64,000 bases of DNA from Trichoplax adhaerens (GCF_000150275.1 NW_002060946.1:282678-346677); one strand, 5' to 3'. Positions 16,501 through 31,778 are shown, counted from the first letter of the stretch. Notes: generated by a model from the sequence alone, not told the origin. Numbers and translations: made by a program.

Positions 16501-19500
16501 TGGATTTATAGAAAAAAATAAAGATGTTATTTTTGAAGAATACCTATCAATTTTAAGAGCGAGTGAGGTATGATAAGTGAAGTTTTTATTTTATAACATT
16601 TAATTTTTATGACTAAATCTTTATTTGCAATGTAAGTTTGAAATTGTAGCCGAAATGTTCCACGAAGCAACTGAAGAAAGATCACGTGGTTCTACTTCAA
16701 GTGGTTCTCGTATTCGTTCTTCTTCGGCTGGCAGATTACGTTTAGGAAATGAAAAGAAAAGACTTAAAACTGTTGGCTCACAGGTTCTTCGCTATGCTAT
16801 GTTAACACTGATGTGAACTCGTCAGATTCTAAACTTGATTACAATTTCTGATTCTAATAGTTTATTGGCTCAGTTGGTCAGCTAATGACGACATTAAACA
16901 ACACCAAGCCTCATTACGTCCGTACGATAAAGCCTAATGAACGAAAAGCTCCATTTACGTAAGCTGTAGAAAAGTATCATGCACACAGATGTGAACTACA
17001 ATCATGATGAGATATACGACACTCTCTATAAAAAATAGCTTATTCAGGAGTTATGATAAACTTTGCTTTAGGTTTGAGCCGACGTTATCGGTTCAGCAGT
17101 TGCGAGCTTGTGGTATTATAGAAACTATCAAAATCAGCGCAGCTGGGTTCCCATCAAGGTAGAAACAACGTTTCTAATTAACCTACGTTATATGTCTTTA
17201 TAGACTTATCCAGTATGTCGACTGTATATATATCTGTATTTTAATTAAATATCAATGTACTAAATTGAAATTTAGGTGGACCTATATGGACTTCTATACG
17301 CGCTATCGAGTTCTTGCAAAGCTATCTAGCGATATCGATCGAAATGATTTAAAGGGCACTTGTTCCAATATAGTAAAGAGTTATATTTCGGTAAGAAACG
17401 TCATTTGGTTCGCTTGTCCTGAAATAATTCTTAAGAAATAAGCTAATATCAGCCTGCCCACCTTTTTCGTAAAAATTTAGCGTACGTTGGCAAATCTAGC
17501 TGATTTGTAGTTGTTAACATACATTATTAGATTGTTTGAGTTTTCAAGACATAGAAATAGGCAGATAATTATTAAATTGTAGTATTTAATTGGCTTCCGA
17601 AGCTACCGATTATGATATGCTCGTATTTCACTATATAGGACGCCGATAAAATTCAGCTTGGCAAAACTAAAATTTTCTTTAGACCAGGACAGGTAAAGCT
17701 AATTCAAAAATTTCTACAATGTTTGTGCCTCCTTTAAAGATATCTAATAGATCGATATCTGCTATTGAACAGGTCGCCTATTTAGAGAAGTTGCGCAGTG
17801 ACAAATTAAATCGTACAAGTATCATGATCCAAAAATTTATCAAAGGCTGGCGGCAAAGGAGACGTTATCAACAGTTACGAAACTCAACAATCAAGATCCA
17901 ATCACTTTACCGTGGCTTATGCGCGCGACGGTCAGCTTTTTTCGATTTCAGACTTGAAAGTATACTTTTTGTGCATGCCTGATAATTAGCGCTTATCGAA
18001 TTGCTTTTATATAATCTGCCATTTTATCGCAGGTTGCTACTATTTCTATGTCAAACCAAAGCTTCAACTGTTATTCAAAAACGATTTCGAGGATTTCGTG
18101 CTCGAAAGGCATATAAGTTGTTACGACAAGTTATCATCCAGATGCAGTGTTTAACAAGGATCAAATTTGCTCGCAAAAAATACGTACACCTACTAAGAAA
18201 TAAAAAAGCAATTATTATTCAAAGAAACGTGCGTTGTTGGATGGAGAAAGCGAGATATTATCGAACTCTTAAAGCGATCATTTTATTGCAATGCTGTTTA
18301 AGGCGGCTAATTGCGAAAAGACAATTAAAGAAATTAAAGGTAGCAGTAAAACTGATATTGCATCAACTTGGTAATAACATACTGTTAACGTAATTGTTTT
18401 AAAGTTACCTAACACTGCCATATATTTTGCGCCCTGCCTTAAACATCACCACATAATTAGATCGAAGCTCGTTCTGTTGCTCACCTGCAAGAATTACAGA
18501 AGGGTATGGAAAATAAAATTATTTCATTACAGCGCCGTTTAACGGAACAGGTAAGCCGAATCACATTACTAACAATGTTCATTTGCTTTCATAATAATGA
18601 ATATACTGTTAAATTATACTAGCAAAAAGAAAATGAAGTATTAATCCGTAGCCAGCGGGAAACCGATGATTTAAAAAAACAGTTAACTTCTTTCAGTGAA
18701 GTTAAAAGTAGTCTGGCTGCAGCTCTTAAACGTATTGATGTTCTAGAAGCTGAAATAGAATCTGCTAAATCGGAGTTAGAAAATAGTAATAAACGATATG
18801 ATGATGTCCTGACTGCAGCAGAAGAAACAGAATTAATCATGCAAAAGGTTTCTTATCTTGAATATTAAATTATGTTGTTTATTAGCATCGTAAATGCTTC
18901 ATATAGGATAATTTTAATTTCTTCATACACTATGTGCACAGGAAATTGATTCAACGAAAGAGAAGCTATCATTAGTAGAAAGTCAACTTAAAGAACAACA
19001 GGAAATCGAAACAGAAAATAGTAAGCTAAAGGAAGAATTGCATTTAACTGTGGTTCAACGAGATGAACATAAGACCGAATTAGAGCAGACTAGAGAACAC
19101 TATCAGCGCCATCTGAAGGATCATGCAAGATTAGAACAGAGATTCGATAATCTACAAGAAGAAATGGAGCTACAGCAAAAGCAACAGCGAGCAATGAATG
19201 AAAAGTTTGCGGGTGTAGTTTCCGGGATCGATTTAGATGTTGATGGCTTAGGTATGTAGGAAGAAATTGAAATTAATAACTTTTCCTTTGTGTTAATTCA
19301 TGATTGGATCATTAAATCAATTATCATATTTATTATACAATTAATTAATCTAGAAGAAGAAACTAGTCAAAGCGCTGAAGGTATATTTTAATAGAACCAA
19401 TTCTTGCACAATTAACACAAAGTAGGAATTTGCGTACGGACCGTATAACTTGCAAATCTTGATTACATAGGAAATGTTCTGTCCGCGATGAAAATAAAGT

Positions 19501-21856
19501 ACGAAATGGTTAAGAACGAAAGAGACAAATTAGAACAAGAATTGAAGAACCTAGGTAATTATTAGGATATTGGCATTTGTACTTAGATATAAACTGTCAT
19601 TTGAATAACCACTAACTGATGATAATTAATATTTTAGCGGGTGAAGCTGAAATTCGTGGTAAAACCAGAACTCGTTTACTGAAAAATGAAGTGGAGAGAT
19701 TATCACAGATGGAGAGACAATATTGGGAACTCGTTACAGTTAATAGTCTGTTACGTCATCACGCTGTAACTGTAGTGGGCAAGTCTGAGAAGGAGATAGC
19801 GAAAGATCTAGATAAGGCCTTGGTGGAAAACGAAAAGTTGAAAAAGCAGCTTGCAACTGCAAAAACCGGCCACAATGACCAAGATACCGCGAAGGAAAAT
19901 ATAAAAGATTATAAATACAAAATTGATGGTAGGAAAACATAGCAGAGTTTTATGACCTACAGTAGAAACTGAATTAACTATATTAATACGTTATTTTTTA
20001 TTGCAATTTTAGATCCACTCCTTGAATATGATGGAGATCTGAATGCACTAATTGGAGCTAATAAATATTTGAGAGCTGCCGTTCGTGATCTTGAACAAAA
20101 ATCAGAAAATCAGCGAAATAATAACGAAATTGTAGTTGAAAATGAACAAGTAAAAGAAGTAGTTGCCGAGAATGAGGAATTGCGACTTCGTTGCAGTAGT
20201 ATGGAAGCCAATATAGAATCACTGAAAAGTCAAATTAGGAGGGAGTTCCGAAAGATGGGTAATAGCGATGAAGTATCTAAAAAACGTGCTAGCAGTTTGT
20301 TCGCTAGTGGTAGGCAACCACGTATAACTGGACCAAATGCAGGACTTGTTATGAGATCTGTCTCTATTGATAAACCACCAGTCGCTGACGATGTTAACGG
20401 TAACGTTAACATTAATGACAGTAATAAAAACGAAGATAAGAATGAAAGTAAAGATGTAACAAGAACTGAAATTGATAAACCAAAATCGAAAGTGAGCAAT
20501 TCGCACGACACAGTAGATGGAAATATTAAAATTAAACACCGCTCACATGAGAGGAAATGTTGGATTCAATTTCGTCGACAAGATATCGGAAATTTTATCA
20601 AGCAGCTTGTACATGCTAAGCCTGATATGATACCAGATGGTATTCCTACATCGCCTGCATTCATAACCTTTATGTGCTTACGTTATGCTGATTATAATAA
20701 TGACGATCGTAGCATACAAGGTTTACTGACCAACTACATCAATGGTATTAGAGCTGTCATTAAAAAGTCGAAAAGTAACATTAATATGACAATATTTTGG
20801 TTAGCCAATACTTGCCGATTAACTCACTTAATCAAGCAATACAGTGGTGATGAATTGGCGGAAGGAGGGGAAGAAAATCAACGTTGGAATTTACAAAATT
20901 TTAACTTGGATGACTACTGTCAAGTACTTACTGATTTATCTGTTAGAATTTACCATGAGTTACTCAGAACTGTACATGAAAAGTTGCAAACGATCATCAT
21001 AAAGGCCATGCTTGAGGCTGAATTAATACCTGATGTTTCACCATCGAAGCAATTCTTTAAGAGTCATCCTAGTAAAGCACAGAGTGGTATTAATGTAACA
21101 ACTATAACTAAGATCTTAGTTGATCTGTTAACAGTTCTCAAAGAATTCGATATTGACGCGGAAGTGATTAAGCAAGTTTTCAGACAAATCTTTTACTTTA
21201 TTGCTGCATATATGCTTAATAACATGTTATTAAGAAAAGATATGTGTAACTGGTCCAAAGGAATGCAAATTCGCTATAACATTAGTCAATTAGAGGAATG
21301 GTGCCGAGACAATGATTTATCGGAAAGCGGTGCCATAGAATCACTTGAGTATGTAACACAAGCGACACAATTATTGCAAGTTAGCAAGAAGACTAAAGAA
21401 GATGTTGATGGAATCTTTGATATGTGTAACAGATTAAACCCGCTACAGGTACTATAAAACAATAAAACGAAAAATTAAGCATAGATGTAATATTTTTATT
21501 TACTGTACGATAAATATTATGCTCCTATGATAGTTTGATTACTACAGTATCTTTAATTATATTATATAGTATTCCCAAGCTCTGATTGCAATCGATCGTT
21601 TTTTCATATGCCTTTTTAGATCCAGAAAATTCTAACTATGTATATGCCAATAAGCGAATTTGAAGATCGAGTGCCCGCTTCTATAATACAATATGTAGCA
21701 GCCCGCGGCGGTACCCAAAACTCAAATTATCGTCTAATGATGGACTTAACTTATATGTTTCCGGTTACATTCTTATTTGCTCAATCTCTTACTAAGCTCG
21801 AAGATGTTTTGATTCCAGAAGGATTAAAGCTACAGCAATACCTGACAATACAGTAA
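10589..21856 (+). CDS. MYO5: Unconventional myosin class V (motor, 6 IQ, coiled coil, DIL cargo-binding tail), many exons
   Basis: Exon 1 MTTEQLYTK, exon 2 [40 protein letters not shown]-loop [30 protein letters not shown], six IQ motifs at ~17820-18330, and a Dilute domain (FWLAN...[28 protein letters not shown]). Confidence 0.97.
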
Positions 21857-23497
21857 TTTGATACTATCTTGACAATCAGACCACCACTTTAAGTGCTACT
21901 CTTACACCGATGCCATATGATCATAAATCCATGTCATTTTCATTTAGCTAAAGTGGACATTATTTATTCAGAAAATATCGGTAATTTTTGCTTTTTGTCT
22001 AGTTATTGTATTTTTTACTAACTGGACCTGTTGATACTTATTCGTATAATATATCAATGATGCACTTCATTAATTTTTTGAAACCATTAGACTGGAGGAA
22101 AGTAATTATTCTAGGTAAAATAACTACGGGTAATACGATAAGGAAAATCAAATTTCATGAAGCAGTTTCATATCATGAAATACGAACTATTGATTACTCA
22201 CGAGCTTATTTTCTTTATTTTCTCATAAGTGTAGTAACTTGTGAAAAGTTGTCGATAAGTTGAAATAGTTATAAGATTAAATGTGAATTGAATGAATGTT
22301 AGCTCTTACGTACCGCAGCGAATTGGCTATGAAATGAAATAGCACATATCATTTTATATGGCCGTATTAGAACTGTGTCGTGAAGGCAAAATAAAAATGA
22401 CCTAGTAGAATTGATTAATTAAAAGATGATTTATGATTCATCTTGTAATTTGGTTCTCAATACTCATAACCTACTCTAAGGGTTACCAAGGTGTAATATA
22501 GATCATATATGCTGTATTACATCGTACTGTTATCATGATGTAATGTACGAATATCAATGTAATAGGAAATTAATTAAGAATTTGATTTTTAAAAGCGCCA
22601 GCTTGGGACTAGTAACATATAAATTGATTAAGACATTATAGTTTGTTAATAATCTTAACATATTTTGTATAAAATTTGTTTTAATAAATTGTGTAACAGT
22701 ATTAATGTCAAATTAAACCATAATTAAATACATGTAAAAACGTAGAAATATTCCCTGAGGATGCATGCTTTACTTACTATGAACTTATGATCCATTAATT
22801 AATACATTAGCACTTAGCACTACTAGTGGTGTTACATATGCAGTTGATAGCGTTTGCAGCACTCTATGTACCATTACATTGATCTTGCAAATCGATCTTT
22901 GACTGTTCCTAGTACACAAGAAATCATTTTATACAACTACGTCCATTCGGCGCTTCTTTCAAAGATTCCGGCGTGCGTATGTAGCTGAGGTAATCATATT
23001 TTTACTTTCAGTTTCTTACTGTTTCAATTTTAATTAACCACTTTTATAGACTTTATTTTACGTCAGTGGATAATTACAGGTATAGACGGGAGATGAGATT
23101 TTATCACAGTCTATGCTAGAATCATATTAATGTTGATTGATATGCAATTTAACCATTACTATTTTAATGTCCCTAATTCGGACACCAATTTATAAAAAAA
23201 ATTATATCATATATTACAGGGCATGTTTAATAAACTATAGAAGCATTCTTGATATCATTCGTAGCTCATGAAAGCGTAAATAATTAAACATTTAGTAAAT
23301 TATTTATGTTATACTTGTAGACTGGCTAGATAAGTATAATATCTTAGTTGATTAACATTCATCATAGAGGTAATATCATTTCTATCACCGACTAAGATGA
23401 AAGATACGTATATTTGTCACTTTACTGACACAATATAAATCTTGCCTTAATTCATGTTTACAAAATTTAGATAATTAACTGAATATATCATCATGAT

Positions 23498-26014
23498 TTA
23501 TGGTACAGAAATACCCTTGTTAGTGCGGCGTTTTCCTAAGGGGGAGGGCATTACTTTCCCCAACTTAACGTTAAATGTCCCTTTCAGAACAGTATCAGAT
23601 TGTAGTGTATACAAATCGTAGGCACCCGGACCCGGAGCTGTATTAACGGTAGAATGAAATCGATCGCTATCTGTTCCCATTATACCTTTTTTGCCACCAG
23701 GACGTTTTAATTTTTGCGGTAGATAATCACTCGGTCCTGGCCATGGACCTTTTGGTTGGCGATTGAGTTCATTGCTAATGCGCTTAGACGATGTTAAGAA
23801 TGGTGTTACTTTACTTTTAGCAATACTCTTAGACGGATATTCTGCTAGTACTTTTCCCTGGCTACGATCGTAAGCCTTGCTGAGATCGTATGATCCTGGG
23901 CCAGGTAATTCACCACTTTTAGGATCGATTAATGCAATACGATCTGATCTAGACATAAACTGGACTGTAGGTTTAACATATCTGCTACCACCAACTGTTT
24001 TAGGATCAACAGCTTGATAATAGCCTGGACCAGGTGCGTCTTTCTTTTCTGGATTAGCTAATGGAACAGTACGAACTGCTGTTGAACCAAAGGCACCCTT
24101 TCTTGAGCTTTCCAATTGGGATTTACGTAGACTATTATCAGCAATACCAGGATAATTGTATGTACCAGGTCCTGGTAAGAATTTCTGACGGCGATGGTTA
24201 TCGAAACGTGCCGAAGTTTTACCAAATGGTACAGCTTTTAAATTTTCAATCCTGTGTAATAACGGCAGTATATAAAGTGAAATTTACAAATCGTTACTTC
24301 GTATTGTGAAATTTATACTTATTGAATAATTTTGCATGTAAAAATAAAGATGCAAAGAAAAATATTATAGTATTCTACTATAAAAAATAAAAGAAGAGTA
24401 TGAACTATTTTTTAAGCTGATAGCATCGAAATATTATACTTACTTGTTTGAAGTTTGAAAGCCAATTCGCGGCTCACCGTATGTGCCAGGAGCTGGAGTT
24501 GAAAATTTTGCTTCAGGGAACCGCTATAATAAATATATGCGCACATTTATAAAGATACTTACTAATACAATAAAGTTATTGATATTCAAAAAGGGGGGTT
24601 AATATTAACGATATACTCGTACACTTCTTTGAGGTTGTAATTTATAAACTTAGTTGTAAGATATTTAAACTGGCTATGATATCCTAACCAGTAATTTCAC
24701 TGCTGTTTGCTATTGGATAAATATAGTAGTTATATGACATGAAAGATATACTTATTGAGACTATTTCGAAATGATTATCACGTTTGAAGAATAGAAAATA
24801 TGTCTTTTGAATGTTTTTAAAAGCTAATTATTTGAAACTTATTTCAATCTTTTAACGATTTTTATTAGTATGACAGGATTGATTGTTTACCTTTGCCTGC
24901 GTTCCAAATGGAACACTTTCAATTATTTTTCCGTCTTCGTCTACTAATGGTGCCGTTGATTTGACAGTTATTGAGTGGTTAATGTCATAAGCTCCAGGTC
25001 CTGGAATACCTCGTTTTTCTTCTTGCTTTTGTAAAATATCTAAATAACGTGGGGAATTGGATTCAAATATTTGATTACCGTTGTCACGATAGGTAGGGTG
25101 ATTTTCTTTTCTATACGACAAGCTGATATCATAGTCGCCAGGGGCAGGACCAGGATGACTATGAAATTCAAGCCTTTTTGAAGATTGCCTATTAAAATGA
25201 ATTCCTCTATACTTATCGCCACAATATCTGACGTTATTGCCGTCGACCGAGTAATATGCTGGTCCAAGTGTGGTATCATGTGATGGAGGTTTTTGCGACA
25301 TTAAATGTCCGCCGTTTGATTCTTCATAACCGTAGGCTTGACTAGGTATTGGGATAGATGGAGCGTCTGGTCTTCTCTATAGATATGGTTGAAGAAGATT
25401 TAAAATAAAATAGGGAAAAAATATAGCAACTATCTCAGCATAAATAAATTTTAAATATTTACTCATATACCTATCAATTCTTTTCTCAATGACTATTTCT
25501 GTCAATTATTGTAATCAACACTATACTCTGTGCGTACATAGCATCGATCTATTCAACGATTTGCTTTACTTTTCAGTATATACTGTATATCAATGTTACA
25601 AGATTGATCGAATTGACTTACCAAATATTGAACTCTTGGCTTAAATTCTGGAATTTTCTTGCTCGTTGCCTGTGATTTATTACTATTGTAAGGATTATAA
25701 GCTCCTGGACCGGGTGCTAGAGTTGTATTGTCGCCGAAGCGTTTGGTTGTATCTTTTAGTGAAGCTGCACCTTTAACACGTTCGCTACCGAAGCGACTAA
25801 ATTCATATTGGCCAGGCCCGGGCGTAGCGATAACGTTTTCTCCAACATCGAGAGCCGATTGGCGTGTTGTCATGGACGAAAATGGGGCATAACTGTCGAC
25901 TTTTCGTTTAGCATTGGCTATTTCAGAGGTAGAATAGGATCCAGGGCCTACATTTACTGATGTACTGCCTACACTTTGAAGGAATTTGCGAGGTGCTCGA
26001 TCATAAACCGACAT
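23498..26014 (-). CDS. STPG2: Sperm-tail PG-rich repeat-containing protein 2 (SHIPPO/PGP repeats), about 4 coding exons
   Basis: N-terminus MSVYDRAPR...GST...VGPGSY...APFSSMTTR matches the STPG2 family. PGPG.Y repeats run through ORFs 25553..26014, 24852..25301 and 23498..24115. Confidence 0.9.
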
Positions 26015-26472
26015 CTTTACTACAGTATGCTATACAATAATTTAACGTCCGCTAGGGTAATAATAAGATAGTGCTGGATAATTTTGTTGTGAAGCAAGTT
26101 CAATTACGGCAATAACATGGACTTGAAGATATCCTTATATCGCAAATAATAATTGTACTGTGTCACCAAGGTAAAATGACACATGCACTTACAAGACAAC
26201 GTTGGAATTGTCACTTTAATACCAAGGAATCGTTATGATAGCAAATTACGAGGGCAAACGAATCATGGACAACTGCTTAATGATCATCGAATTTAGCGTA
26301 ATTTCTCTAGTAGTAACCAATAATGTTGACCAATTTGTAAATTACTTTTAACTTTTACCCTACAATGTAACTTTACTTGTAGCACTCTTAGCATCAACAA
26401 TAAAAGACTAATATTAATTACACTTTATGCAGTCTAATCGTTTTGGGGGTTTTTTTGACGATTGCTGTTGCA

Positions 26473-26486
26473 GTTGTCATAGAAAC
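26473..26486. promoter_or_regulatory. RFX X-box upstream of STPG2
   Basis: GTTGTCATAGAAAC (reverse GTTTCTATGACAAC) fits RTHNYYWTRRNRAC, about 460 bp upstream of the STPG2 ATG. Confidence 0.72.
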
Positions 26487-26800
26487 CAAAAGCTATTTGA
26501 GCAGATGTCTCTCTGTCGGGATTCCGAGTGTAATTGAGAAATGGATGAGTGGTTGCTATACAATACTATGCGTCGAACAATAGTCTGTAAATAGTTGATT
26601 TACTATAGAGTAGAAGAGTACAAGCTACTTGGACTACAATACTACTACATTTTGGATCAGCTAAGATCACCACAAGACTGGTCAAAACCAGTATATATGG
26701 CCAAACAAACGTTAACCATACATCATTCAGTATAGCATATCACCAGCTCTCGTTATTTGATCACTGTGCGTGGTTTTGGCCCGTTTTTGCTGGCCAATGG

Positions 26801-26855
26801 CCATATGCAAATGAACAAGATTGGCTTTCCTTACTGTTTACCATATGCAAATGAA
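26801..26855. promoter_or_regulatory. Twin octamer (ATGCAAAT) elements in a 15-bp direct repeat, with nearby CCAAT boxes, upstream of arsC
   Basis: CCATATGCAAATGAA occurs at 26801-26815 and 26841-26855. CCAAT at ~26794 and ATTGG at ~26820. Confidence 0.5.
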
Positions 26856-27098
26856 GCAGATGGTCATTAATTAGGCTAGCTTTGTATACAGTAGTAGCAA
26901 TAATATAGCGTAGATAGGTTCGATTAATTATTGCTTCCAGAAGGTAAGACGTAGCTCGCAGACTAGTCAAACTCTGGTAGCTGCCTTGCTTTAGCAACAG
27001 AAGCCAAGCTGCGAAAGTTGGCACGGGCCCCTTTTGAGAATTTCCACACGTTAAAGTAATTGAGCAACTGAAAGCTTCAATATCACCATATTTGCATC

Positions 27099-27521
27099 AT
27101 GTCTGCAAAACGCTCTGTTTTAGTACTCTGCACCGGCAATTCTGCTAGAAGCCAGATGGGCGAAGGTCTTATCAATGCACGCTTGGAAGGATTTGAAGCC
27201 TATTCTGCAGGCACCCGTCCAGCACCACAGGTTAATCCTAATGCAATCGCTGCTCTTGCCGATATAGGCATCGATATTAGTAGCAATCGACCCAAGTCCG
27301 TGGACGAATTTAAAGACCGCCGATTTGATTTTGTTATCACTGTCTGTGGCTCTGCTGATGCTAACTGCCCTGCTTGGATAGGCAAAGTAGGTAAAAGATG
27401 TCATATCGGTTTTGAAGATCCTTCTCATACACAGGGTACACCTAACGAGATACTGGATGCATTCAAAAAGACTCGTGACATGATTGAAGATCAAGTATTT
27501 GCCTACTTGAGAAGCCAATGA
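27099..27521 (+). CDS. arsC: Thioredoxin-coupled arsenate reductase, LMW-PTP fold, bacterial type, intronless
   Basis: 140-aa uninterrupted ORF with P-loop C11TGNSAR17SQM, SAGT.P, resolving pair VITVC83GSADANC90P and acid loop FED107P. Cys spacing (72 and 7) equals that of Staphylococcus/Bacillus ArsC C10/C82/C89. Confidence 0.9.
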   Translation: MSAKRSVLVLCTGNSARSQMGEGLINARLEGFEAYSAGTRPAPQVNPNAIAALADIGIDISSNRPKSVDEFKDRRFDFVITVCGSADANCPAWIGKVGKRCHIGFEDPSHTQGTPNEILDAFKKTRDMIEDQVFAYLRSQ

Positions 27522-29205
27522 AATAGAAATATTGCATTGGCTACATCTCATGATATCAGTATCTTGTATAACTGCCATGCTACGATTGTAAAGCAACAGT
27601 AGTAGGCCAGTTGGTGAAACGATGATCGGATACTTTGGACGAACACGAAATTTCCACTAGCTATAACAGCACGCATAATTAATCCATATCATCTTCATTG
27701 AGGATAATTTGATGCGTTGTTTTAACTTGCTTAGCACGTTAGCATAGCTAAGTACACCTACACTACAGGATATTAGGACGATGCTAGATTAAGATACGCC
27801 AATATTTATGATATGTACCTTTATAATTTCGTTTAAATTCTCCATGATATGCAAATCTGTTCGAATAGAGCAAATTCTTATCAAGTATCGGTAGCTATCA
27901 AAATTTTACTATGATAATTATTTATTTATTTATATCAGTAATCTGATGCCAGTTCATCACTGCAATATTGTAGCATCAGTAGCTTGTTGACCGGTATAAT
28001 AAATAGAAGCAATTGATTAAGTTGAGCGTGGCAATCATCATGAATCAACTTTGAATTCTCTTTAGCTGAAATTTATAATTCTTAATCAATTTCCTGGTGT
28101 TTGCACATTGATTCTTCTTCTCTTACGGTACATCGCAAGCACGAGCTCAATATTGAGCAAAGCATGCAAACTCCATGGAATCGCCGACAAAGTTGCACCA
28201 TTCAGGGAACTGTTGTGTTCTGTCAAACAAAAGTTATCTCAAAACTTCATTCATGAGAAAAGTGCTGCTAGTAAATAGCACTATTTTATACTCGATTCTT
28301 TAAAGTACTGCATATGAAGGTTTTAATCATAGCCAACACTGTCAAATGAGCTAGTAATGCTTACTTGGCTGATATTTACTTACGAGCTAAGCCCAGAATG
28401 GAACCATTTCTTAATCGATTTCGATTCATATTTTACGAATAAGATTAGTAGATGCAGTGCTTAAATATAACTGAATCTCGATCTCCTAGTTATCGTATCT
28501 AACTTTGGGATGATATTCAATTTATTGAGGGTATAGTGATACACTAGTTCTAACGCTACCATTGCTATCTCTAATGCAGACTGCAGCCCTGGGAAAGCAG
28601 CATAACTTAGCCAAGTCATATTAACTACAGATTTAAAGGCAGAGCTATTAATACATCCAACCCGAACTGCCTGCGATCGAAAAATAGACCTGTGATCCAT
28701 TCATGGCCAGTCTTGGTCGTCAGCATTAACAGTGGAAGAAGAGAGAGGATATCAATCCGCCATGATTTCCAGTCATTTCCTGGATTGAGCAGTACTACCA
28801 GCTCCATTCATGTGTCCACTCCATAGTACTTTGACTATACCGAGCGGTACCCCGTCATACTATATTCTATACTATACCATACTAAAGCAGTATAGCTACT
28901 CGTTCATCGTCGGTTATGCTTATACAATTTCCTACAATGGTGTCGTCACAGTCAGTGGACTAACCGGAGTAGGACAGCAGTAATGAAGAAATCGATGGAG
29001 GCAATGCTGCTGCAAATTGCCTTCCAACGTCGTAATTCCTCCATACTACTGAAATTGTAATCCTACTATCTATCAAGCCTTGACTCTTCTCTATTACTGT
29101 TCTTATGATTACTGTATAAAGGCTATAGTTTAGCAGTCAGCCTCTATTTTAACCAATTCCCCTCTTATACTACCGATTGGCGTCGACCTCAAAAAGTTAC
29201 CAGTT

Positions 29206-31778
29206 ATGCCATTAATTATCATCACCGGTTTCCCATGTAGTGGCAAGAGCCTTCGAGCCCAGCAATTAATAGATTATATCAATGAAAATCATCCTGATTA
29301 TGCCGATCATATTCATCTCATTAGTGATCATAACCAAATGGTTGATAGAAATAAAGCTTACGAAGGTAGTTAATTGATATCATTCTTTAAATGGACATCC
29401 TGTTTTGTATAATTTCGCATGCTTGACTACAGCAATAATATACCAGTAAAGCTTCTTATTTAGACTCTTATGTATTATAGTAAAATATGGTATCTTGAAA
29501 GAACAATTTTAAAGATAATTACTGATGTCAATTCTCTTTCATGATCTAGCTTCAAATGCTGAAAAATCGGCTCGAGGCCATTTAAAAGCCGCAGTTGAAA
29601 GGTAAGCATGCCATCGGAATAGCACTACGCGAGAACTATACAGTCTAATGCTACTACCTATCATGCAAATCGATGCCTTGATATTGACTATGAATACTCT
29701 TGATTTACTTTTAAATGAGTTTAATGGCACAAATATTAACTAATGACGTATATTTTGGTCCTATAGGATAATTTCAAGCAAGGAAATTGTCATTCTTGAT
29801 TCATTGAATTACATCAAAGGTATACTGTACTATGTCCACTCTACACGTACATAGTAGATAGGCAATCCTATACAAGAGCAAAAATTTCTATTCTCTGCTA
29901 CAATTACTTGCCAACTTATTTCATTTATACACGTAAATTTCATTGGTAATCATAGAAATACGCTCTTTAAAACATTCTTCACTAGAACCGTATGATTTAT
30001 CAACCTTGCCATAAGTTCGATATCCTCTAATAAATATTCAACACGAACGAATAGGATTTCACTACGAACTATATTTACTAGAGTTGTATGATTGATCAAC
30101 CTCATTACCTGTTAGACCTTCTCTAATAAATATTCATCTCGAATGAATCAGGATTTCGCTACGAACTATATTGTATTAGCAAGTCTGCCAAGACAACTCA
30201 TTGCGTGGTAAGGTTATTTAAAGCAGGATCTGTAATACCGTAGATGCATTGTGAACGTTAAAAGCGTTCTCTGCTAAGCATTTTAATACGATCGATTCGA
30301 TTGGTGCTCACCAATCATAAATTAGATTTATATCCAGTGAAAATCAATCAACTAATGTCTAACTAGGCCATGATATTATGAACGTAGTATAATTATTTAG
30401 TTTTATAGTATGCCTAACGTCTGTGATGACATATCCACAGATATTTTGCGCTGTAACGAAAGATCAAGTAGAAGATTGGAATAGTAAAAGAGATAATGAC
30501 CAGCAATATCGTAAAGATATGTAAGTATTAGGCCTTACTTTGTAGTATACTGTAACCTTCTGTAGACTAAATATCAACTGCTGCGATAGGTACTCGTATT
30601 AAGTAATTGTACTTTTGTAGTTACTATATTATACTTATAGCATCTTCTATCTTACATAGCCTAGATGCATTAGTAATGAGGTATGAAGCACCTGATCCTC
30701 GAAATCGTTGGGATTCACCTCTTTTTGTAGTTCAGGTACATTAATTCTGGCTAAGCATAAAAATTTAACTTTTATAAAAGATATATGGTAGAAATACTTG
30801 AAGTGGATAGATGCATAAATTGTATTGGTCTATTCGAAAACAGGAACTAGATCAACTGCCATGTCAAACTATATGTGATGCATTATTTCATCGAAAACCA
30901 CCTCCGCCAAACCAATCTACTCAATGTGTAATCACATTCAATAAATTTTTACTACACTAGATAATTATCCATACTAATAGAAGAAAATGATAATGTGATG
31001 AATAATTCCAATGTGAAAACGTATAACGGTTTATTATGTCTTGTTGTAGCAACCATTATCAACAAATAATTTATTGTTCGAAATGGAGAAGATTACCATG
31101 GATATGATCACGGTACATTGACATTATCTCAATCTTGCTAACATTTTTGGTACTTATCTCCGTTTATATTTTATATCAGATGGTTATATACTATTGAATT
31201 ACACTGAAAGTTAATGTGATAACTTGTATCATTTACACTTTAAGAAATCTTTTTGTACTACTTTAATCCCTATTTATATTATAGACAATATTCCAACAGC
31301 AGAACAAACATTTGCCCGGTGAAGAATTAGTACTTCATCCAAAATCAAAAGAAAAAATATCCTTTACAGTTGAGTTTATTAAAGTCGTAATGACTTGCAA
31401 ATAATCGCTACAACCTAAATATACAATTACGATTAATATATCCCACTTCTGCATTAGCTTACAATTTTTTATTCTACACGTACACTGCATATGGTAGAAG
31501 TATAATCATGAATGTCACTGCGGTGTTAAGGGTTAACTTAAACTATCATGTACACATTTGTAATATGCCAATAATCTTGAAAATGCAGTGCTATAATTTT
31601 TAAAGTCGTATTGTTTCTCCTTAACCATTCTTACTTCAAATTTACGGAACGATTGTCCATGCCAAAGCTACAGCAAATTCGTCGTCAATTTATCGTTCAG
31701 TACAAAAATCGGCCTCCAAGTGACGCGTCTCAATTAGGGGAAATGTTCATTAAATTTTTGAATATGCAATTATCCTAA
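29206..31778 (+). CDS. KTI12: Elongator-associated P-loop protein KTI12, 10 coding exons
   Basis: MPLIIITGFPCSGKS, VILDSLNYIKGFRYELYC, MRYEAPDPRNRWDSPLF, PPPPNQSTQ and C-terminal LQQIRRQFI...EMFIKFLN; TAA at 31776-31778. Confidence 0.95.
29981..30172. repeat. ~96-bp tandem duplication (2 copies) spanning a KTI12 acceptor and exon start
   Basis: ACTAGA...GTATGATT.ATCAACCT...CTCTAATAAATATTCA...AGGATTTC.CTACGAACTATATT occurs twice. Confidence 0.88.
31357..31634 (+). other. U12-type (minor spliceosome) AT-AC intron, last intron of KTI12
   Basis: Donor ATATCCTTT at 31357, branch site TTCTCCTTAAC at 31615-31625, AC at 31633-31634. Removal joins ...PKSKEK|FKFTERLSMPKLQQIRRQF in frame. Confidence 0.93.

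Follow-up and report, generated by a model that had tools for sequence, protein, structure and literature searches.

The genome of the placozoan Trichoplax adhaerens contains a gene for a small protein of the arsenate reductase (ArsC) family whose affinity is to bacteria. We consider it probable (roughly 0.7) that an arsC gene was transferred long ago into the nucleus of a placozoan ancestor, landed between the genes for STPG2 and KTI12, became adapted to its host and was retained, and that its product works as a reductase resembling the ArsC of plasmid pI258. The gene lies in a stretch of 64,000 nucleotides (GCF_000150275.1 NW_002060946.1:282678-346677), which we refer to as the window.

The ArsC-type gene and its genomic setting

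The coding sequence occupies a single exon at positions 27099–27521 of the plus strand, stop codon included, and was assigned to the ArsC type (LMW-PTP fold) from the reading frame, profile matches and structure matches. The first-pass annotation had reported here an intact ORF of 140 aa, the lack of a Shine-Dalgarno sequence and an AATAAA at 27998, and all three observations were borne out. The frame runs without interruption from ATG to TGA over 140 codons; upstream of the ATG it is open for only 9 codons, too few for an unspliced extension of the N-terminus. No AGGAGG-like motif precedes the ATG. The candidate polyadenylation signal AATAAA (27998–28003, plus strand) is located 477 nt past the stop codon and is the sole AATAAA/ATTAAA in the region 27522–28400, that is, within ∼880 nt past the stop. 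The intergenic region 26015–27098, common to ArsC and the divergent STPG2 gene, presumably contains the promoter and the 5' UTR. It is not conserved in diverged placozoan contigs, in which the CDS alone is conserved.

Several repeated elements were observed around the gene. A 33-nt unit starting with CCATATGCAAATGAA occurs in two copies 40 nt apart (26801–26873), ∼250–300 nt upstream of the ArsC start, and the octamer ATGCAAAT is present in four copies within 1.05 kb around the gene, compared to 15 in the window as a whole, where 7.7 are expected; further motif positions are 27090–27097 and 27849–27856. The octamer and the 33-nt motifs recur in Trichoplax sp. H2 but have no counterpart in the diverged placozoan contigs; the ATGCAAAT cluster was for this reason rejected as a conserved promoter element. 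In addition, a 22-nt inverted repeat (82% complementary; 26620–26641 and 27966–27987) encloses the ORF together with its upstream region and the AATAAA, and may be due to chance in AT-rich DNA.

The ArsC ORF is present in a single copy in the assembly (105.6 Mb, 1414 contigs). Its best database match, 'Protein ArsC [Trichoplax sp. H2]', is 99% identical and comes from an independent assembly, in which the respective contig is colinear with window positions 17135–37514 at 99.0–99.5% nucleotide identity. The gene order in H2 is myosin V (+), SHIPPO-repeat/STPG2 (−), the 140-aa LMWPc gene (+), KTI12 (+) and PRP3 (−), and all neighbours of ArsC are annotated there as multi-exon models. In the window, the neighbouring genes were searched exon by exon, without joined gene models. 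The upstream neighbour is the spliced STPG2/SHIPPO-repeat gene (23498–26014, minus strand), with exon ORFs at 25553–26014, 24852–25301 and 23498–24115 (the H2 model encodes 570 aa over 2.5 kb); it provides context and lies outside of the transferred DNA. Downstream follows, also as context, the spliced KTI12 gene (29206–31763, plus strand), of which PF08433 matches four separate exons (29206–29370, 30151–30258, 30661–30930 and 31641–31763). A candidate AT-AC (minor spliceosome) intron of KTI12 was noticed at 31357–31634, between exon matches 3 and 4. The earlier description of ArsC as the only intronless coding sequence among 12 genes holds for the immediate neighbours, which are spliced and to which our check extended. 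The GC3 value of the ArsC ORF (0.35) lies between the extremes seen in the KTI12 exons (0.18–0.39), compared to 0.50–0.73 in the bacterial relatives.

The Trichoplax genome also contains, on another scaffold, a separate spliced ACP1-like gene fragment. Its GNICRS exon (G000:C1414:6216955-6217035, minus strand; positions 1501–1581 of locus L086) encodes GNICRSTMAEGIF, which is the P-loop typical of canonical LMW-PTPs of animals; the conserved residues that precede GNICRS are missing from this frame and probably sit in an upstream exon. Since an ACP1-like phosphatase exon is thus present separately, the ArsC gene is an addition rather than a replacement. The claim that neither arsB nor acr3 neighbours the gene was found to apply more broadly: profile searches for ArsB (PF02040) and ACR3 (TIGR00832) gave no match anywhere in the Trichoplax genome. 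A search of the same genome for arsenite methyltransferase (NF008823) retrieved weak generic methyltransferase exons only.

At the protein level, residues 7–135 match the Pfam family LMWPc (PF01451; E 9e-18). In order to evaluate the catalytic residues, we aligned the query with 30 homologues (alignment A2, 31 sequences), in which the invariant columns include C11, T12, G13, N14, S15, R17, S18, C83, C90, P91, D107 and P108. The motifs CTGNSAR (with C11 and R17), C83-x6-C90 and D107-P, pointed out by the first-pass annotation, therefore all have their key residues in invariant positions. The predicted P-loop, C11-T-G-N-S-A-R17-S (27129–27152, plus strand), would supply the nucleophilic cysteine and the oxyanion-binding arginine, both of which align with the CTGNSCRS motif of 1jl3. 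The putative redox loop C83-GSADAN-C90-P91 (27345–27371, plus strand) is equivalent to the Cys82/Cys89 region of pI258 ArsC, and D107-P108 (27417–27422, plus strand), which aligns with the FDDP motif of 1jl3 and 1lju, is equivalent to its general acid, Asp105.

Among NCBI models, the best scores were obtained with two of the thioredoxin type, TIGR02691 (107.3 bits) and PRK13530 (94 bits), followed by the glutaredoxin-type LMW-PTP ArsC model TIGR02689 (62.4 bits) and a phosphotyrosine phosphatase model (31 bits). The query stays below the strict equivalog cut-offs of all of these models, including those of TIGR02691 (174.3 bits) and TIGR02689 (157.6 bits), and its cysteine spacing is that of the thioredoxin type, not Cys80-x-Cys82. 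PF03960 (R773-type ArsC/Spx fold) matched neither the protein nor any part of the Trichoplax genome. The best sequence matches among solved structures were Bacillus subtilis ArsC (1jl3; E 3e-23, residues 6–133), Staphylococcus aureus pI258 ArsC and Deinococcus indicus ArsC2. An AF2 model of the protein has a mean pLDDT of 92, the sole softer stretch being residues 81–100 (block means 70–77), as expected for a mobile redox loop. Foldseek searches with this model ranked D. indicus ArsC2 (8p5n; TM 0.87–0.91) at the top, followed by the B. subtilis and pI258 enzymes, with TM of 0.8–0.9 for ArsC structures. Human and yeast LMW-PTP structures ranked far lower (16–19% identity); together with the P-loop CTGNSARS and the acid loop D-P-S-H, this agrees with the earlier statement that the protein is not an animal LMW-PTP (ACP1). 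Judged from its sequence and model, the protein is in every structural and residue feature examined a member of the thioredoxin-type LMW-PTP ArsC branch. It possesses no signal sequence, and a thioredoxin partner would consequently be cytosolic.

Bacterial relatives and the origin of the gene

Placozoan copies aside, the best 120 of 7997 hits in a database that includes EukProt and nr are led by proteins of 50–61% identity encoded in metagenomes or in the genomes of bacteria, and these 120 include no further named eukaryote. A scan with one genome per bacterial species resulted in 80 named loci, with Chloroflexota (Ardenticatenaceae, Anaerolineae, Thermoflexales) at the top, followed by Acidobacteriota, Bacteroidota and Ignavibacteriota. 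As anchors for the root of the phylogenetic trees, we used pI258-type ArsC sequences encoded on plasmids of Staphylococcus, Cytobacillus and Lactococcus. A quick analysis (LG+G4, 127 rows) and a careful one (LG+C20 PMSF mixture model, 59 rows) were in agreement. In the 59-row tree, all placozoan sequences group together (100/100), with Ardenticatenaceae L005 and metagenomic P0003 as the sister group (94/89), and both are nested in a clade with 14 named members, all of which are Chloroflexota (92/91). The pI258-type anchors form a clade (100/100) apart from the large one that holds the query. Phylogeny had been suggested as a check by the first-pass annotation, and its outcome, nesting among bacterial ArsC together with the absence of other named eukaryotes from the best 120 of 7997 hits, speaks for the proposed transfer. 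An AU test did not reject the best tree in which the placozoans are kept out of the Chloroflexota-type clade (delta lnL 8.6, p 0.33), so that a Chloroflexota-like donor is likely rather than demonstrated.

Sequence comparison thus makes the bacterial affinity in general clear, and points, with moderate support, to the Chloroflexota-type ArsC branch as the most likely donor. The known symbionts of Trichoplax are not implicated; the affinity is to Chloroflexota and not to Rickettsiales. Taking into account the score below the TIGR02691 cut-off and the separate clade of the pI258-type anchors, the query is not a pI258 equivalog but a member of the wider ArsC group, in a neighbouring and mostly unstudied clade. 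The architecture of Staphylococcus and Bacillus thioredoxin-coupled ArsC, to which the gene had initially been likened, is consequently matched in residues and spacing, whereas the closest relatives are those from Chloroflexota (50–60% identity, compared to 35–39% for the Staphylococcus/Bacillus type).

To characterize the neighbourhoods of the bacterial genes, ACR3, ArsB, ArsR, PhoU and PstABC proteins (annotated or Pfam-typed loci) were compared with the 80 named loci. Most of the copies from Bacteroidota, Acidobacteriota and related groups have ACR3 and/or ArsR within 4 kb, a classic ars setting. The Chloroflexota loci are divided: seven of the 14 are found in pstCAB-phoU operons, five adjoin ACR3, and two (L005 and L007) show neither arrangement. 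P0003, the closest bacterial match (60%), is located in a dense bacterial context, 41 nt after a gene for a pstB-like ABC ATPase and 17 nt before phoU. None of the nearest bacterial relatives lies in an ars operon; they are either linked to pst-phoU or without informative neighbours, which weighs against the arsenate reductase reading. In the P0026 group, the order is pstC-pstA-pstB-LMWPc-phoU-LMWPc-phoU. ArsC-like LMW-PTP genes were seen in phosphate-transporter operons of Chloroflexota (pstC-pstA-pstB-LMWPc-phoU) at L094 (822–6151), L087 (206–2055), L006, L047, L062, L068 and L079, and the LMWPc-phoU pair is doubled in L094 and L095. Many of the bacterial homologues (P0013, P0017, P0089, P0110 and others in alignment A2) carry a hydrophobic, signal-peptide-like N-terminal extension of 20–35 residues, an unexpected feature if these were cytosolic reductases that depend on thioredoxin; the placozoan proteins are devoid of it.

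Arsenate enters cells via phosphate transporters, and an ArsC encoded within a pst operon would therefore make sense as protection from co-imported arsenate. Furthermore, arsenic islands are known to include pst and phoU genes alongside the ars genes (PMC3834237). An arsenic-related role for the family is supported by the ACR3 and ArsR genes that adjoin its more distant members, and we infer from the conserved cysteine relay and this wider family context that arsenate is the substrate of the placozoan protein. No assay of the pst-linked Chloroflexota ArsC subfamily was found in the literature.

Retention in placozoans and alternative explanations

ArsC is also present in two more, diverged placozoan-like lineages in public assemblies (86–89% identity at the amino acid level). 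The copy of the first lineage (lineage A; P0002, 86% identical) was found on Logan contigs of the runs SRR30660616 and SRR30664517. Its similarity to the window begins and ends exactly at the CDS boundaries, beyond which the contigs are rich in AT and poor in ORFs; in the diverged copy L003, the flanks match neither the window nor the Trichoplax genome. The lineage of SRR30664517 was traced with one long myosin V exon ORF as a query. In the closest cluster of matches (88% identity), one sequence comes from a 5-kb contig of this run (L102). There, myosin V exons precede STPG2 exons of opposite orientation, an arrangement colinear with window positions 19646–24523. The third copy (lineage B; P0196, 89% identical, with one extra residue) is located on a 3.2-kb metagenome scaffold, L104 (ENA ERZ23499115), which displays STPG2 exon 1 (77% at the amino acid level), ArsC, and KTI12 exons 1 and 2 (87–89%) in the same order as the window.

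Residues C11, R17, C83, C90 and D107 are conserved in every placozoan copy, as are the P-loop and the redox loop. Nei-Gojobori dN/dS values are 0.061 for the window versus lineage A, 0.044 for the window versus lineage B and 0.065 for A versus B, with respective dS of 1.3, 1.35 and 0.56. ArsC is under strong purifying selection and appears to have been functional since before the sampled lineages split; a comparison of dN/dS with related lineages had been proposed beforehand, and the values of 0.04–0.065 leave the gene firmly on the purifying side. Between the window and lineage A, the distance is 20% for the CDS and 14% for the protein, which lies within the spread of orthologues between Hoilungia and Trichoplax (mean distances of 28.5% and 28.3%; Eitel et al. 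2018, PMC6067683). The diverged contigs thus appear to represent another placozoan genus. With L104 and L102, at least two placozoan-like lineages with the order myosin V-STPG2-ArsC-KTI12 are available, which should be useful for dating other candidate transfers. The proposal of the first-pass annotation that a bacterial arsC was integrated and domesticated finds support in the nesting of the gene among bacteria, its host-like GC3, the selection acting on it and the animal genes on both of its sides.

The shared STPG2-ArsC-KTI12 order and the selection are also strong evidence that the gene is neither an assembly chimera nor a symbiont contaminant. Bacterial DNA of a rickettsial endosymbiont is known from Trichoplax assemblies (PMC3641634), and such a sequence might in principle have been misjoined to an animal scaffold. 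However, the junctions, an examination of which had been suggested for this very reason, are identical in the two independent Trichoplax assemblies and the order is spanned by the diverged contig L104; the gene has AT-rich, ORF-poor flanks, host-like GC3 and one genomic copy, and its affinity is to Chloroflexota, not Rickettsiales. We therefore rejected contamination, which the shared junctions, GC3 and affinity effectively refute. Considerably less extreme, though still quite improbable, is the vertical inheritance of an old eukaryotic or metazoan gene that was lost in almost all other animals. In its favour, the AU test does not reject a tree in which the placozoans branch apart from the Chloroflexota-type sequences, the gene is old enough for a total loss of any compositional trace of a donor, and the survey of eukaryotes extended to the best 120 of 7997 hits. 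On the other hand, when the pI258-type root is used, the placozoan clade lies several supported nodes deep among bacteria; the gene is intronless in an intron-rich neighbourhood and 50–60% identical to its Chloroflexota homologues, with no other named eukaryote in those 120 hits.

A different kind of objection concerns not the origin but the function: the gene might be real, selected and derived from a bacterium, and yet have a main job other than arsenate reduction, for instance as a redox-regulated phosphatase or an enzyme acting on another oxyanion or a phosphate-linked substrate. We regard this as unlikely, although it deserves to be taken more seriously than vertical inheritance. Consistent with such a role are the position of P0003 between the pstB-like gene and phoU, the pst-phoU array of the P0026 group and the pst linkage of seven of the 14 named Chloroflexota loci, as well as the score below the ArsC equivalog cut-off (107 versus 174 bits) and a host that has no ArsB or ACR3 gene for arsenite efflux. 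The ArsC of pI258 itself has weak phosphatase activity, which would also fit. However, the Cys11/Cys83/Cys90 relay, needless for a plain phosphatase, is invariant in the family and in the placozoan copies, other members of the same family adjoin ACR3 and ArsR, and the pst linkage fits arsenate reduction equally well, given that arsenate is imported by phosphate transporters. Arsenate reduction by a transferred gene thus remains the preferred reading.

Predicted function and comparison with known systems

According to this preferred history, a bacterial arsC gene, from a donor whose thioredoxin-coupled ArsC most likely belonged to the Chloroflexota-type branch, would have been transferred to the nuclear genome of an ancestor common to the sampled placozoan lineages. 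It would have been inserted between STPG2 and KTI12, would have taken on the codon usage and the expression signals of its host, and would since have been retained, presumably transcribed, in a single exon on which strong purifying selection acts. The cysteine-relay mechanism of the pI258 and B. subtilis enzymes is established, and by analogy the 140-aa cytosolic protein most likely acts in the same way. C11 of the P-loop would attack arsenate, held by R17, with D107 helping in the activation; C83 would then attack C11, with release of arsenite, and C90 would attack C83, leaving a C83-C90 disulfide at the surface. Animals in general possess cytosolic thioredoxin, and the disulfide could be reduced by the thioredoxin/thioredoxin reductase/NADPH system of the host. 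Since ArsB and ACR3 are absent from the genome, arsenite would be handled by animal routes and leave the cell by a path other than these two transporters.

Animals are not known to reduce arsenate other than via side reactions of other enzymes. A dedicated, bacterial-type reductase long retained by an entire early-branching lineage of animals would therefore represent a clean case of adaptive gene transfer to animals, and, the protein being small and its mechanism well understood in bacteria, one that is simple to test. The pst operon linkage of the closest bacterial relatives further suggests an ecological reason, namely arsenate stress under phosphate scarcity. Going beyond this, we tentatively put forward, with somewhat more doubt than conviction, that placozoans are the first animal phylum with a dedicated thioredoxin-coupled ArsC, that it comes from the pst-phoU-associated Chloroflexota subfamily and that it was kept against arsenate co-uptake in warm, phosphate-poor seawater, arsenite being removed via aquaglyceroporin, ABCC-type export or methylation. 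Part of the picture is already known: the H2 record names the protein ArsC, and both arsC transfers to fungi and algae and other bacterial transfers in Trichoplax have been published. The value of the present case is moderate in view of the existing annotation and the similar transfers. In the literature, which could be searched incompletely, we found no paper on placozoan arsC or on any animal thioredoxin-type ArsC; searches on arsC transfer to metazoans and on transfers from Chloroflexi to placozoans likewise yielded nothing on this gene.

Transfers comparable in outcome are those of bacterial arsC into fungi and green algae (PMC5552862; PMC7826186), in which a bacterial arsenate reductase gene has likewise been fixed in a eukaryotic nuclear genome. 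Compared by description rather than by sequence, the fungal and algal genes are often clustered with arsB/ACR3 and arsH, whereas the placozoan one stands alone. Within Trichoplax, Driscoll et al. 2013 (PMC3641634) described 12 candidate bacterial gene transfers; arsC is outside of these candidates, and the words arsenate, ArsC and arsenic are absent from that paper. Like those transfers, the ArsC gene is of bacterial type and resides on a large scaffold among eukaryotic genes, but its affinity is to Chloroflexota instead of Rickettsiales or Chlamydiae. Animal LMW-PTP (ACP1) shares its superfamily and fold (PF01451) with the placozoan protein and differs from it by the CLGNICRS and DPYY motifs, which are absent from the latter, and by low identity (16–19% to human and yeast LMW-PTP).

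Closer similarity is found to the characterized bacterial enzymes. The ArsC proteins of pI258 and B. subtilis (1ljl, 1jl3, 2ipa) share with the placozoan protein the LMW-PTP fold, the CX5R P-loop, the spacing of the Cys10/Cys82/Cys89 relay, the Asp105-Pro pair and a similar length. Unlike them, the placozoan protein, which is 35–39% identical to these enzymes, falls below the TIGR02691 cut-off and has alanine in place of the P-loop Cys15 of pI258, and its gene is a lone one in an animal nucleus rather than part of an arsRBC operon. D. indicus ArsC2 (8p5n, 8p6m), which in contrast to the placozoan protein is bacterial, matches it over the full length of the sequence (36% identity; TM 0.87–0.91, rmsd 1.5–1.8 Å). 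The closest of all are the Chloroflexota homologues (Ardenticatenaceae L005, metagenomic P0003, and those of Anaerolineae and Caldilineaceae), which are 50–60% identical, sister to the placozoan sequences in both trees and of the same length, P0003 having no N-terminal extension. Their genes differ from the placozoan one in being GC-richer (GC3 0.50–0.73) and in residing in dense gene arrays, often of the order pstCAB-arsC-phoU.
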